Assembly (NCBI RefSeq): GCF_052425735.1
Contig: NC_135768.1
Coordinates: forward strand, 16,926,001-16,990,000
Length of the DNA: 64,000 nucleotides
Direction of reading: 5' to 3'
DNA from: Oculina patagonica
Taxonomy: Eukaryota
Shown here: piece after piece, positions 4,742 to 63,660 of the stretch
Numbering within the stretch: position 1 is the stretch's first letter
Layout of the letters: every line of letters starts with the position of its first letter
The notes under the pieces: generated by a model
The model's input: only the letters and a program-made list of their open reading frames with translations
The model's database searches: none
Told to the model about the DNA's origin: nothing
Position numbers and translations under genes: made by a program

Positions 4742-5632
4742 TCAGTGACTCTTACAACACAGTTTTTGTAGCGTCTTGATAACAGCCGCTCTGAGTTCGG
4801 CAAGGCGCCATGAGTATAAAATTGGATTAATGGCTGAGTTTAAGAAAACCGCTGTTGTACCAAAGCTTCGAGTATTTTCTTGACCTTGAGCCAGCAACAT
4901 GGACATTTCAATGAACACTGGCGTATAACATAAAATCATGAAGATGTAGAATACAAAAGTGCTAATTGCACTTTTCTTTAAACGCATTATCCTCAAGGAA
5001 TCTCCAATTTCCTGATTAGGTAAAACCGCCTGTTGTTGAGCATAAATGCGCGTTTGGTGATGGCGAACAACTCGATAAATTCTTATGTAAGAAAACGTCG
5101 AAATCGAGAGATAAACGCATAAAGCTACAGCAACGATTTGATAGTAAATGTTTGGGCTCCAAGTATAAATAAATGGCAAAATAATGCTGTACATCCATAT
5201 AATTATCAAGATAGCCCTGACTCGAGATACAGTCATGAAAACAGCGTACTTTATATGATTGTGAAGAGCCAGAAATCGGTCTAAACTTATGGCGGTGATC
5301 GTACAAAGTGAAACACCACAACAAACGAACCCAACTTTGAGCCACAGCTTTCCAAGAAAGTCGTCCTGCGCAAGTCCACTGATAATGAAGAGAGGTTGCA
5401 CAACAAATCCAACAAGAAGGTCTGAAACAGCGAGACCGCTCAAAAACACTATTGAAGGTGATCGCCGCAACGAAGAAGCTGTGAATATGGCGGCCAGCAC
5501 TAGAGCATTCCCAGTAATGGAGACGAACATCAATGGTATATTTATGACACAGTTTACGATAACAGAAACATCAGGCGGAGAGCTTGTATCTACCAATTTA
5601 GTTCCATTGCTTATGCTGATGTTATACAACAT
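4742..5632 (-). CDS. Intronless class A GPCR, 296 aa (R1, divergent member)
   Basis: Seven hydrophobic segments with GNALV, LAVSDLLVG..QP, DRFLAL, CYTP and NSAINPILYSWR; N-terminal glycosylation sequons. Confidence 0.95.
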   Translation of the reverse strand: MLYNISISNGTKLVDTSSPPDVSVIVNCVINIPLMFVSITGNALVLAAIFTASSLRRSPSIVFLSGLAVSDLLVGFVVQPLFIISGLAQDDFLGKLWLKVGFVCCGVSLCTITAISLDRFLALHNHIKYAVFMTVSRVRAILIIIWMYSIILPFIYTWSPNIYYQIVAVALCVYLSISTFSYIRIYRVVRHHQTRIYAQQQAVLPNQEIGDSLRIMRLKKSAISTFVFYIFMILCYTPVFIEMSMLLAQGQENTRSFGTTAVFLNSAINPILYSWRLAELRAAVIKTLQKLCCKSH

Positions 5633-6298
5633 ATTCTTTTTGTAAATTAGTCGTGTCGTCTTTTTAGCGCGTTAAAACCAATCCAAGGCGTGAGACAGGA
5701 CTGTATTTTGCTGCCTTGAAACTGAATAACTGAGTGGCCAGAATTTTCAGATGCAATTTGATATTTAGTTCTTAGCAGGCTTTTCCTGTCAAAGAAAAAT
5801 AAAACCCAAGAGGATACACTTTCTGAAGCGCTTTCAGCGAATCTCACACACGGTGTTATTTTGAGCATCAGATTGAACTAGTGACATCGCAGCACGAGAT
5901 TTAACCCGCTGTCTTGTCCGACATCCGTTTTAAACAGTAGCCTGGTAATGTATGTAAAAACCGAAATTCAATTTCTATCCAAACACGAGACAAATAAGCA
6001 AACAAAGATCAATTACCATGCCAGATATTGTTCACACTTTTTAATTGCCATCATTGCATGATGAAGAAATGAGATTTATTTGTTTTCGCACCTGCTGCAG
6101 TCCAATTTTCTACGGGTTTAGAAAATGCGTGATAAAAAATGGCCGCATTTTTAACCTTCCCAACCACTGAGAATAAAATCAAAATTTGCAATACAGAAGC
6201 ATTTAATTCCAACTGATAGAGTAATCAACTGCTTCTTATAACGTAAATAATGCAAAGTAAGGCTACAAACGATTAAGTCTGTTTTCTTCAACATTTTA

Positions 6299-6586
6299 CA
6301 CCTAATTGCAATAACGTTGTCATAGAAAAAAGTAAAAAAGAAAAAAGGTAAATAGGAATTAATTAGCTTAGTTTCATAACAGGTAGCATTTACAGAAATT
6401 TCACGAGTTTTATCTTCACTTTTGAAGTCCACATTTTTATGCTGTAACAAGATTAATTGATTTATTCATATTTTGAAGCATTTTGAGGCCATTTGTATGA
6501 ATAAATTTCATGCATGCGCTTAATTAATTCCTATTTGACTTTTTCCTTTTTACTTTTTTCTATGACAACCTTATTGCAATTAGGTG
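6299..6586. mobile_element. Tc1/mariner-type MITE (TA TSD, ~70-bp TIRs)
   Basis: TA-CACCTAATTGCAATAACGTTGTCATAGAAAAAAG ... CTTTTTTCTATGACAACCTTATTGCAATTAGGTG-TA. Confidence 0.85.
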
Positions 6587-59960: not shown

Positions 59961-62757
59961 GTTTGTAAAACAGATATCCCTTGTAACCTGTCCAAACTTC
60001 TAATTCAAGCAAAAAGCCAAATAATATGGGAGATATATAATAGGTCTAGCTGCGCCTCTCTTTAGTGCTAATTGCCAAACCTAGGAGACGGAAACTCGGC
60101 GATTATGTGAGGTAAGTGAGATAATTGAGCCAGCGGAAAGAACAAATTTTGTCCGTTTTCTTTTACAGCTGTCAAAACTAGAGCACACAGCAGGCCGTAA
60201 TTTTCAATTATAAGTTAAAATTGCATCTCAAGAAACCTGATACTAAAACCACTATATTCTAATCAGAAACATCAACTTATAGCTCAGCTACAACATTTAA
60301 AATTGTTTTTCCCCTTCTTAGAACCACCTGTCCAGTTTATTTGCTCACTTTAAATTCAATTAACGCGAGCCGTCTAAGTGTTTGAGCATAACCCAGACAC
60401 CGATTTGTTTAACCACAAGTCAAGTGAAAGTGGTAAATTTATAATTTTGGTTTGTCATTGCTTGCGCACGCTCCCAGGGCAGTTTATAGAAAATTACACC
60501 GCGCTTGCGTAACCAGATCTGATTGCGAGTTTGCCTAATAGTCGGTCGCTTGGTAATGCCAAATATTGATAGTTGTGTGCTGGGGAGTTTAGCTAGTGTC
60601 AGTAGTGTTTAGTATTTGAAAATGGAAACCATCTGGCAGGTGTTTTGCTTTTCTACCAGGTCAAAATATCAACTTTCGTTACTAATTCGCGAACCCTGAA
60701 GTTCAAAACCCAGCTAATAACGATTGCGTTTTTCCTGCCGTATATCAAAAATATAGCGACTGCGAAACAAACCTTGAAAAACAGAAGCAAGCAAAATGGA
60801 TAGAAATCTACCAATCACAACAGCCAGAGGTGACCTTTTGAACCTGTTGGGGTGAACTTCTGATTCGTGAGGGGTCTGCTTTAAAAATTGACGGCAGCGA
60901 AAAACGTAACCGTTGACTGAGCAGAGTTCGTGTGTTATTGAAAACTGCAGTAATGTTCCTTTTTCTATCAAGAAGATATCTAATTCTTTTGATGATTATG
61001 GGAATTTCTTTAGCTATCTCTTGGGGATACATTGTTTTACTAAGAGACAAAAAAAATCAGTCCGATCAGATATAGCTGATGGATTTAGGTATGTATCAAT
61101 TTGTTACTCAATCGTGGCAGAAAAGCCTAAATTGTTGGATAATACAAAGAATGGAACCCAGTCAGTGCAAAGTTCCAGTGCTAGGAAAAACAAACTCGTG
61201 TGGGAAGACAAATAATTATTATTCTAAGCACTGTTTAGTATCGTTTTAATTGATTTTTCCAATGTTCTATTTAATCTGTGATAACATATAAGGAGCCTCG
61301 TTTAAAGGCTAGAAAACAAAATGGAAATTTGTGCTGTCCTTGTAACATGTTTTCGTCCACCAATCTTTTTTTGTATTGTGCGCTGACGTCTTAGCACTTG
61401 AAAGCGGACAGTTGTGAGAGGGCAACGAAGTAGATATCATGTACTGTGTTACTAACTTTTTTCACCAATAATGGCTTAAAACGCATTACGATAATGGAGT
61501 GATAAAATATATTTATGTTTTTGTTAGTAAATTAAAATAACAATTAAATCTTAAATGCACAGTTATGAGAAATTGCCATGAAACAAAAGTGCTACGATTC
61601 TCAGGACCTTAGCACGCTAAAAAATTTTTCCGTGGGTCGGTGGATCAGCGGAAGAGTTTTAAGTCGAGTCATGATTATGTGACATTTAAAAAGGTCCCCA
61701 GTTAATATACTGCAGACAACATACATTTGTTTAACTTTCACGTACTTCGATTGACGTATGTCAAGTCAGTTTGAAATGAAACATGTTTCCTATTCAATAG
61801 CAAATATCATTTACAAGCCGTGTCGGGCTAAAAATCACATTCACCATTGTTTATTTTATCTGTACAGTTTGAACATCTCATTGTAATTTACCCTGAAAAA
61901 CCATTTTTGGAGAGGGTGTCTTAAAGACACCGATACCCAATAAAAATGATGATAAATTCGGATCCTTAACAAAAAGCACGTGAGGAAACTAGCTTTCGAA
62001 ATGTAAGTCAACATCCAAATTCTTTCTACAAGTCACCATATAGTTCCAACAGTGCTAGTTGGAGGAATTCGATCACACGTCAAGTATTGTAGAAATTCCT
62101 TTTTTTCTTCTTTTTTATTATTTTTCTATATATGCATGTCCTATAGGTTTTGATTATTTTTTTAGCTTTGCTGTGTAACGCGCTACAAAATGTTGCTATA
62201 TTCACGCTTTACTGGTCTCTAAGAGTCATCCATAATACTTACACTATCGATGTTTTTGTATTGTACAAAGAGGAAGCATCAAGATGGTCTTCCTGATATG
62301 TCTATGACCGGTTTCGTTTTAAGTTTAGCTAATTTTGACTGGAAGAAACTTTTTTGGTCCCGATCTCTTATACAGGTGCTTGTGGATTGAGCCCAAAAGT
62401 AAAAAAATAACTGCGTCATCTGGAATTGGATATTTTCCTTCTAAAAGTCACAGGAAATTATTAAAAGTTAAATGAAACTCTCGTCGAGTCATATCAAAAT
62501 TGTATTAGGTCATCTGCATAGAATTACCAATTCTAATTATGTCAAGTTAATGAGTGAAATACAGAAAGTAAGGAACAGGAAAAAGGAAGCTCATTAAAAC
62601 ATAGACGGCTGTTTCACAAATACAGTCATTTACGTACAACTGTCGGGTATTATAGCTTCCAGTGTTTCAAAACAACTTTTTGACTTGCCATCGGCTCAAG
62701 GAAGACAGATATTAACATTACTTTGGCATTTTGGGTAAGGAAAGGGCAAAAGGCACT

Positions 62758-63660
62758 ATGATGAACTACACCTACAAAGACAAGAATGGACCAGTCATTC
62801 AAGACTACAATATGCGTGAAACATTTGTCATCATAAACTGTGTTTTGAACGCTCCATTGATGCTCATATCCATTCTGGGCAACGCTTTGGTATTGGCCGC
62901 AATAGCAAGAACTCCTTCCATTCGCTCAACTACAACGATTATGCTGTGCAGTCTGGCTGTTTCGGATCTTTTTGTGGGTCTCATCGCTCAACCGCTTTAT
63001 CTTGCAGATCTGCTTACGACGGGAAGTTTTGTAGCCGATCTGTCGATAATGGTAGGTTTCTCTGTATGTGGAGTGACCCTATGGACCACAACTGCGATTA
63101 GTGTGGATCGCTTTATGGCTCTTCACTATCACATGAGATATGCTACTTTAGTGACTACATCCCGTGTCAGATATTCTGTAATAATCATATGGTTGATCAA
63201 CATACCTTTTTCAGGGTTCTACCTTTGCAAAGAGCGCGAATATAAATTTACTATCGCAGTTATGACTGTGACATGTCTGGCAATTTCCACATTTTGCTAC
63301 ATTCTAATTTATCGAATTGTTCGTCGGCATCATTCGCAAATTTTTGCGCTACAGCAGACAGTGCAAAGTGTGGCTGCTGGAAATGACGGTTTACAGATCG
63401 CAAGACTGAAAAAAAGTGCATTAAACACTTTCGTATTTTACATCTTTTTGATTATTTGTTATATCCCAATGTACATTTTATTAACCCTCTATGGAATCTC
63501 TTACATCGAGTGGACGATAGAATGGAACTTTATTACCATTCTAGTGTTTATGAACTCAGCAATTAATCCATTTTTGTATTGCTGGCGTCTTCGCGATGTC
63601 AGAACGGCAGTAGTAAAGACAGCAAAGCAGATGTTATGTAAACAAACAGACGAAAACTAA
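62758..63660 (+). CDS. Intronless class A GPCR (R19); likely start MMNY at 62758
   Basis: 7TM; DRFMALHYHMRY, NSAINPFLYCWR; divergent in orientation from R17. Confidence 0.95.
   Translation: MMNYTYKDKNGPVIQDYNMRETFVIINCVLNAPLMLISILGNALVLAAIARTPSIRSTTTIMLCSLAVSDLFVGLIAQPLYLADLLTTGSFVADLSIMVGFSVCGVTLWTTTAISVDRFMALHYHMRYATLVTTSRVRYSVIIIWLINIPFSGFYLCKEREYKFTIAVMTVTCLAISTFCYILIYRIVRRHHSQIFALQQTVQSVAAGNDGLQIARLKKSALNTFVFYIFLIICYIPMYILLTLYGISYIEWTIEWNFITILVFMNSAINPFLYCWRLRDVRTAVVKTAKQMLCKQTDEN

Follow-up and report, generated by a model that had tools for sequence, protein, structure and literature searches.

We analyzed a 64-kb stretch of the genome of the coral Oculina patagonica (assembly GCA_052425735.1, chromosome CM126645.1, from ~16.926 Mb; hereafter the window), which carries a tandem array of genes for G-protein-coupled receptors (GPCRs) of class A. 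Loci were called by self-tblastn with the 12 long open reading frames (ORFs) of the window, at normal and permissive thresholds, and by six-frame motif scans. Between positions 4742 and 63660 there are 19 class A GPCR loci of ~300 amino acids (aa), each with a single coding exon, and 16 of the 19 lie on the minus strand. Eleven loci are intact, four are full length but frameshifted and four are fragments, exactly the count given by an earlier reading of the same DNA (the original prediction); 8 of the 19 (42%) are thus broken. The ORF listing yields 12 open frames of ~300 codons, a number that includes the pseudogene at 59072-59995. The full-length copies with frameshifts (FRAMESHIFTED) are 33868-34784, 35989-36931, 45783-46726 and 59072-59995. 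The genes had also been described as single-exon, and this holds for the coding sequence, the only part to which the evidence extends.

Three motifs recur across the array. DRF.ALHYHMRY is present in exactly 10 copies in the window (15 with a relaxed pattern), (R/K)SA.NTF in 12 (16 relaxed) and NP.LY[CS]WR in 17, every one of them inside a receptor locus. These recurrences reflect homology between the copies, not chance. The termini are short, as had been claimed, with 26-35 aa ahead of the conserved NC at the top of transmembrane helix 1 (TM1) and 20-23 aa past CWR. Outside the receptor loci, no credible ORF of at least 90 aa and no peptide-precursor or other non-receptor gene was found in the 64-kb window, and within 10 kb of gene 18355 (genes are named here by their first coordinate) the source assembly annotates receptor genes only. 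The region therefore holds receptor genes only, with repeats between them.

Self-blastn of the window shows how the array was built. The repeat unit consists of the coding sequence plus ~1 kb of upstream flank and recurs with a period of 2.2-2.6 kb across 31-55 kb. For instance, 35953-37886 and 40934-42842 are 80% identical over 2 kb, beyond the coding sequence. The array grew by tandem duplication of these 2.2-2.6 kb units and of one larger block (Table 1), and copies are lost through frameshift and truncation. The copies are not young, because even the closest intact pairs share only 63-72% aa identity and have synonymous divergences (dS) of 0.41-0.69.

All copies tested match the Pfam model 7tm_1 with ~87-102 bits (cut-off 30.5; E ~1e-25 to 1e-29), and this model scores above its gathering threshold in 93 of 93 family members. 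The 7tm_4 and nematode Srx/Srsx models gave weak secondary matches only. An AlphaFold2 (AF2) model of gene 43626 from a diverse alignment (A3) has seven TM helices and helix 8, with a predicted local distance difference test score (pLDDT) of 91.8 and a predicted TM-score (pTM) of 0.89; a first model from a shallow alignment (A2) had a pLDDT of 60.8 and was discarded for the A3 model. We assigned Ballesteros-Weinstein numbers from the anchors N45, D73, R123, W150, Y186, P241 and P275 of gene 43626 and counted architectural features in 93 relatives down to ~30% identity, including Nematostella XP_001630359. The class A microswitches are invariant or nearly so (N45, D73, D122-R123-(F/Y), W150, C238-Y239-x-P241 and N274-P275-x-x-Y278). 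TM6 carries CYxP, a variant of CWxP, and NPxxYCWR runs into helix 8.

Among these relatives, Cys3.25 is absent in 92 of 93, Asp3.32 in all 93 (mostly Gly, Ser or Ala stands there) and Pro5.50 likewise in all 93 (usually replaced by Cys). Only 28-31 residues separate W4.50 from position 5.50 in 92 of the 93, and in the model TM4 (139-162) passes almost directly into TM5 (164-207), leaving a second extracellular loop (ECL2) of ~1-2 residues. The nearest solved structures by sequence are beta-adrenergic, histamine H2, alpha-adrenergic, adenosine A2A/A2B, melanocortin (MC1/3/4/5), cannabinoid and trace amine-associated receptors (TAARs), and the nearest folds to the model are beta-adrenergic, H2, D1, A2A and octopamine-beta receptors, at 19-26% identity. 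The family profile aligns 268 of its positions (30-297) to 268 residues of MC4R, from TM1 to helix 8, with zero net indel. The A2A and H2 alignments, by contrast, break at ECL2, where these receptors have 34-37 extra residues. Because of the minimal ECL2, the missing Cys3.25 and Pro5.50 and the length equal to that of MC4R, the family is built like a melanocortin receptor, and we regard it as probably an anthozoan alpha-branch family of melanocortin-receptor shape. With ECL2 nearly absent, no TM3-ECL2 disulfide and no Pro5.50, the modelled receptors would have an open, lidless pocket.

The original prediction had expected automated pipelines to label such genes as adenosine, melanocortin or amine receptors, and this is true of RefSeq, where paralogues are named histamine-H2-, MSH-, MC4R-, beta-2-adrenergic- and adenosine-A2b-receptor-like. 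Because the ligand-defining residues of the named receptors are absent, the names reflect overall similarity and not the ligand. An aminergic identity was rejected since none of the 93 relatives has Asp3.32, and C3.25 and D3.32 of the beta1-adrenergic receptor face Lys and Gly of the profile. The adenosine receptor was also rejected: A2A aligns in two pieces, with ~37 extra ECL2 residues, and position 6.55, whose Asn we take to be a ligand contact in adenosine receptors, is Leu in 77 of 98 sequences. Nor are the acidic contacts of MC4R with ligand and Ca2+ kept, which we take to be E2.60, D3.25 and D3.29; position 2.60 is I, L or F in the family, and 3.25 and 3.29 are hypervariable (3.17 and 3.50 bits).

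To compare variability along the receptor, we computed column entropy in an alignment of 98 sequences (A2), separating the outer from the cytoplasmic half of the helix bundle. Mean entropy is 1.60 bits in the outer half and 0.66 bits in the cytoplasmic half (Mann-Whitney p = 1e-17), and the 11 proteins of the window alone have the same pattern (p = 1.5e-9). Among the 23 hypervariable sites (at least 2.3 bits), 21 fall in the outer half, and 11 belong to a list of 41 generic class A pocket sites that was fixed beforehand (odds ratio 6.8, p = 8e-5). This list comes from the literature and not from a structure with bound ligand. Variability peaks at 2.64, 3.29, 3.33, 4.56, 4.60, 5.36-5.46, 6.51, 7.36 and 7.39. 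Nearly invariant are TM1, the first intracellular loop (ICL1), inner TM2, 3.42-3.54, ICL2 (ALHYHMRY), 5.58-5.70, ICL3, 6.30-6.41 and the segment from 7.45 to helix 8. The cytoplasmic face is marked by DRF-ALHYHMRY in ICL2 and HQxQIxAQQQAVQ in ICL3; helix 8 has NPxLYCWR..ELR, behind which the tail usually carries a Cys.

Selection was assessed by partitioned Nei-Gojobori estimates, pooled over seven independent pairs. Outer and inner halves have similar dS (0.44 vs 0.38), while nonsynonymous divergence (dN) is 0.21 in the outer and 0.12 in the inner half. Because dS is similar while dN differs, the constant inner face reflects purifying selection, and gene conversion is ruled out as its source. 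Pairwise omega (dN/dS) between intact window genes is 0.15-0.46 (median 0.30), which is relaxed for a GPCR and clearly constrained. No overall omega above 1 was found in these comparisons, the sole exception being a foreign paralogue pair (1.08, measured on 41 codons). We do not claim pervasive positive or diversifying selection, since pooled omega is no higher in the pocket than in the rest of the protein. In two clear cross-species orthologue pairs, omega is lower in the pocket (0.10 and 0.09) than elsewhere (0.28 and 0.22, respectively). For paralogue pairs, the values for pocket and rest are 0.40 vs 0.35, 0.40 vs 0.31 and 1.08 vs 0.69. Such a contrast would be expected if pockets altered once a gene had duplicated and were kept from then on; with so small a sample, we treat it as a lead, not as proof.

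One part of the cytoplasmic face deserves separate mention. The third intracellular loop is normally the most variable cytoplasmic part of class A receptors. In this family its Gln-rich block HQxQIxAQQQAVQ (residues 196-208 of gene 43626) is more than 90% conserved across the 98 members. A transducer or a kinase may dock there, in a manner specific to the family.

Related loci were compared in three further sequences: L004 (GCA_044670265.1, 5 kb), L005 (a 1.28-Mb ENA contig) and L002 (a 20-kb locus). We take these to be coral, on 80-94% nucleotide (nt) identity and shared gene order only. Gene order in L005 is the same as in the window, with gene 31444, gene 27598 and its flanks, the non-coding segment 21099-22678 (69%) and gene 18355 in succession (gene identities in Table 1). 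Nothing stands in place of gene 25085 there, and the array core holds three or four copies, compared with about ten loci in the window. L004 matches window positions 38388-35997 at 93.7% over 2.4 kb, intergenic DNA included, and carries an intact orthologue of pseudogene F' (dN 0.041, dS 0.142, omega 0.29). Since the L004 copy is intact at such low divergence, F' was probably inactivated recently in O. patagonica. L002 has three related genes within 20 kb, and an Orbicella relative is a single copy next to an ion-channel gene. In a FastTree phylogeny of 129 family members, genes 31444, 40967, 43626, 48153 and 50355 form one supported clade, in which several genes pair with sequences from other assemblies.

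The array thus has conserved edges and turnover in its core, because orthologues are found in place while copy number shifts, and its partial synteny with other corals means that it is not purely species-specific. The original prediction had called the repertoire lineage-specific; this needs qualifying, since the family is found in, at the least, stony corals and a sea anemone (Nematostella XP_001630359), and genes 31444, 27598 and 18355 have positional orthologues in L005. The family is large: 962 clusters at 50% identity reach E <= 1e-30, and at least 28 paralogues from the O. patagonica genome are among the best 120 matches. Many sister arrays occur in this genome, one of them 1.24 Mb past the window.

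Coordinates of the receptor loci and of other features are given in Table 1.

Table 1. Receptor loci, the larger duplicated block and the assembly gap in the window.
Feature	Position	Strand	Details
Intact receptor gene	4742-5632	-	296 aa; most divergent copy (DRFLALHNHIKY, NPILYSWR); 7tm_1 E 2.3e-28, 7tm_4 38.5 bits
Intact receptor gene	18355-19260	+	301 aa; positional orthologue in L005, 79% nt
Intact receptor gene	25085-25987	+	300 aa; nothing at the matching position in L005
Intact receptor gene	27598-28524	-	308 aa; L005 orthologue 81% nt including flanks; pocket omega 0.09
Assembly gap, 153 N	31073-31225	.	Intergenic; on the 3' side of gene 31444-32358, 218 bp from its stop
Intact receptor gene	31444-32358	-	304 aa from first ATG; L005 orthologue 82% nt; pocket omega 0.10
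Pseudogene, full length, two frameshifts near 34283 and 34170	33868-34784	-	
Segmental duplication in array	34966-44741	-	34966-38388 (flank, F', G') matches 39526-44741 (flank, F, G), ~80-84% nt
Pseudogene F', one frameshift near 36605	35989-36931	-	L004 orthologue intact, 317 aa
Fragment G', residues 154-300, 87% to gene 43626	37947-38387	-	147 aa here; 242 aa in L004
Fragment, C-terminal ~80 aa with frame change	38605-38858	-	
Intact ORF, gene F	40967-41887	-	306 aa; DQF instead of DRF; 3.40 = Gln
Intact receptor gene G (DRY)	43626-44534	-	302 aa; reference for numbering and structure model
Pseudogene, frameshift near 46200 and one in-frame stop	45783-46726	-	
Intact receptor gene	48153-49070	-	305 aa from first ATG
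Intact receptor gene	50355-51272	-	305 aa; closest intact paralogue 48153 (72% aa, dS 0.46, omega 0.35)
Fragment, N-terminal ~55 aa with stop and frame change	52015-52169	-	
Intact receptor gene	54632-55543	-	303 aa; nearest relatives are the 3-gene array in L002 (76% nt)
Fragment, C-terminal 44 aa	58903-59034	-	
Pseudogene, 307-aa open frame, N-terminal third out of frame	59072-59995	-	Homology changes frame between 59725 and 59689
Intact receptor gene	62758-63660	+	300 aa from first ATG

Among the open frames, gene 40967 stands out by two substitutions, Arg3.50 to Gln (the DQF of Table 1) and Leu3.40 to Gln, of which R3.50Q also occurs in one other O. patagonica paralogue (P0044). Its coupling is possibly impaired; the gene would either have lost its function cryptically or encode a non-canonical receptor, a decoy or an arrestin-biased one. 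Elsewhere, two adjacent short gene calls at L005:2327-3241 (99 and 188 aa, both 7tm_1) resemble one receptor split by a frameshift, which suggests that the L005 array carries pseudogenes too. The ~1.6-kb segment 21099-22678, between genes 18355 and 25085, corresponds to L005:16132-17676 and contains no ORF and no receptor homology; an untranslated exon, a regulatory region that has been conserved and an old repeat common to both assemblies are possible explanations.

The assembly gap lies ~2.5 kb from the start of gene 27598-28524 and breaks no receptor locus, and self-tblastn found no receptor-like coding sequence on either flank. Both flanks are collinear with the orthologous locus in L005, where the anchors are 404 bp apart, compared with ~757 bp here (including the 153 N). 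If the gap size is roughly correct, nothing as long as a gene is missing. Continuity through the Ns is presumed, and none of the conclusions drawn here relies on it. Several spacers contain repeats. Between the 38605 fragment and gene 40967, a 216-bp unit forms a perfect (100%) two-copy tandem repeat (39309-39740), which either arose by very recent duplication or is an artefact of assembly, and directly 3' of gene 43626 a 178-bp unit is present in 1.9 copies at 93% identity (43100-43444). Over the segments 52678-53168 (~491 bp) and 52228-52424, word depth ranges from hundreds to tens of thousands in each of the four read runs used, and one contig of read run X9 skips the former (joint 52677 to 53169). 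This looks like a high-copy mobile element resembling a miniature inverted-repeat transposable element (MITE), with insertion polymorphism at the site. An 8-mer survey for a shared promoter motif in the 700 bp upstream of 14 loci returned only AT-rich words, which are common in the AT-rich DNA here; the similarity of the upstream flanks is due to the duplications themselves.

We consider the best overall explanation, one that we hold to be rather probable, to be that this tandem birth-death array of minimal class A GPCRs is a ligand-diversified repertoire. Each copy would have its own stable ligand, and all copies would feed one common transducer, possibly of Gs type, as most of the known receptors nearest to the family couple to Gs. 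The role would most likely be sensory in a broad sense: the receptors would detect peptides or small molecules in solution that come from prey, microbes, conspecifics or the environment. A chemosensory role is plausible. That the repertoire evolves like a chemoreceptor cluster, as originally proposed, is borne out by its many broken loci, tandem birth and death, relaxed constraint, constant signalling face and variable pocket. A wider proposal, which we advance only tentatively, is that corals and sea anemones have in this ECL2-less, melanocortin-shaped superfamily their main chemosensory GPCR repertoire, an independent alpha-branch analogue of odorant receptors (ORs) and TAARs, with paralogues each specific to one stable waterborne cue (settlement, prey, spawning or microbial) and sharing a pathway that is possibly Gs and cyclic AMP (cAMP). 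Published work offers context that is not tied to the window family: in coral gene families that have been amplified in tandem, the commonest domain is that of rhodopsin-like GPCRs (PMC10236652); many 7tm_1 GPCRs are expressed by the neuronal cell types of a coral atlas (PMC8162421); coral larvae show an enrichment of GPCRs at their aboral pole, which is sensory (PMC12225738); and GPCR-pathway genes rise with settlement competence (PMC5755313).

Several observations weigh against a ligand-diversified, sensory repertoire. The closest intact paralogues are old, and pooled pocket omega (0.36, 0.27-0.49) is not above that of non-pocket sites (0.41). The pocket sites themselves were assigned through motif-anchored Ballesteros-Weinstein numbers and a list from the literature, and Gs coupling is deduced solely from which known receptors are nearest. 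Several genes are positional orthologues with conserved pockets, which fit endogenous ligands equally well as external cues. Lastly, reads over 47500-53400 from four runs, three of them possibly RNA and the fourth of unknown type, gave deep pile-ups on repeats and 2-6x contig fragments over two coding sequences, for which DNA carry-over or paralogues could account.

Some of these points would be expected if the receptors served ligands made by the coral itself (neuropeptides and peptide hormones, or else lipids or metabolites) and had diversified alongside expanded internal signals. This alternative, which we think unlikely and yet weighty, draws on the kept orthologue pockets (omega ~0.1), the age of the paralogues (dS 0.4-0.7), the match in build to the peptide-binding melanocortin receptors, the expansion of anthozoan-specific neuropeptide-receptor clades (PMC11087051) and the many 7tm_1 GPCRs in coral neurons (PMC8162421). 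However, the 64-kb window holds no peptide-precursor or other gene, 962 clusters and 42% broken loci would be unusual for hormone receptors, the overall omega of 0.3-0.46 is relaxed, and the Nematostella receptors that have been deorphanised were picked from peptide-receptor-like clusters. Quite improbable, in our view, is that the array senses microbial or Symbiodiniaceae metabolites in innate immunity or symbiosis and not in classical chemosensation. Such a role was suggested by the authors of a study of tandem duplication in corals (PMC10236652), and copy number does differ between corals; the modelled lidless pocket would also suit small metabolites. Nothing in the sequence points to immune cells, however, and the idea overlaps with a broad chemosensory role, from which it differs in cell type and cue only. 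Moreover, O. patagonica is facultatively symbiotic and still keeps a large repertoire.

A likeness to ORs had been read from the motifs DRF..., KSA..TF and NP.LY..R..ELR, but melanocortin-type receptors match these better, or the motifs are common to class A in general, and the reading is not supported. In Nematostella, OR orthologues have been proposed from a TM2 motif and a neighbour-joining tree by Churcher & Taylor (PMC3017388). This TM2 motif (L..P.Y.L...L...D........P) is found exactly in 6 of 316 family sequences, all distant members, and in 0 of the 11 window genes; the OR TM3/ICL2 motif MA.D.Y...C.PL.Y is found in 0 of 316. A weak 7tm_4 match in 63 of 93 members, the single coding exons and the tandem arrangement also fit true OR orthology. 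The window genes, however, score 23-38 bits with 7tm_4 and ~100 bits with 7tm_1 (best family E-values 3.6e-12 and 2.4e-34), and no OR is among the best 60 PDB sequence matches or the fold matches listed, the nearest listed structures being amine, adenosine, melanocortin and TAAR. In addition, ORs have a long, Cys-bearing ECL2 together with Cys3.25, neither of which the window family has, and they also differ at Pro5.50. Every feature of OR membership tested fails; this is not an OR family, and orthology to chordate ORs is very improbable. Even less probable, we believe, is that the array is largely decaying DNA, a by-product of local amplification in which most 'intact' copies are non-functional. 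Eight of 19 loci are visibly broken, gene 40967 has no Arg3.50, and the read fragments over 47500-53400 speak for neither transcription nor silence. Yet omega is well under 1 in every intact pair (0.15-0.46), eleven ORFs of ~300 codons are still open at a dS of at least 0.4, the cytoplasmic face is near-invariant at normal dS, and orthologues are kept in other corals.

Corals choose their settlement site, their spawning time and the microbes and algae that they tolerate largely by chemistry, and to our knowledge not one receptor for an external cue has been identified in a coral. Should arrays like that of O. patagonica hold such receptors, they are a practical start for deorphanisation. The best first candidates are genes 31444, 27598 and 18355, which are intact and have conserved pockets and cross-species orthologues, and the cytoplasmic face that all copies share suggests that a single reporter system, to begin with cAMP, could do for the family as a whole. 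In pathway analyses of coral transcriptomes, meanwhile, the RefSeq names (histamine, adrenergic, adenosine and MSH receptor-like) mislead.

That GPCR genes are amplified in tandem in corals has been published before, and this locus is one of many. The coral orthogroups of Noel et al. 2023 (PMC10236652) and the Nematostella 'OR-like' arrays (PMC3017388) represent the same phenomenon and probably the same superfamily of tandem, single-exon 7tm_1 genes specific to corals and anthozoans; the Nematostella 'OR-like' genes may belong to the anthozoan superfamily of the window genes. Both papers give counts and trees and do not cover the window locus itself, and in the text available neither the ECL2-less architecture nor the contrast between orthologue and paralogue pockets is described. 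That architecture and that contrast are what is added here, and they make the family easier to deorphanise. In other phyla, sea-urchin 'surreal' GPCRs and lophotrochozoan class A expansions are likewise clustered and intron-poor and have been read as chemosensory (PMC11886862; cited in PMC9897584). These expansions are independent and involve other subfamilies, and in sea urchins the chemosensory reading is backed by expression in sensory appendages.

Among receptors with known ligands, the closest parallel in build is with the vertebrate melanocortin receptors (MC1R-MC5R, which belong to the MECA cluster of the alpha group), which likewise have a minimal ECL2, no Cys3.25-ECL2 disulfide, no Pro5.50 and short termini. 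Both also carry ..R..ELR.. in helix 8 after (N/D)PxxY. Identity to the window family is only ~20-25%, however, and the likeness may reflect either common descent or convergence. The melanocortin receptors moreover have CWxP and five dispersed genes, whereas the window family has CYxP and hundreds of members in tandem arrays.

For the way of working, as opposed to kinship, the nearest systems are the OR and TAAR clusters. The best 60 PDB sequence matches include three TAARs (TAAR9, TAAR7f and TAAR13e). TAARs bind amines via Asp3.32, which the window family lacks in 93 of 93 relatives. Like the window array, OR and TAAR clusters consist of genes with a single coding exon in tandem arrays, with many pseudogenes and changing copy number, and they too combine a conserved G-protein face with variable pocket residues in TM3-TM7.

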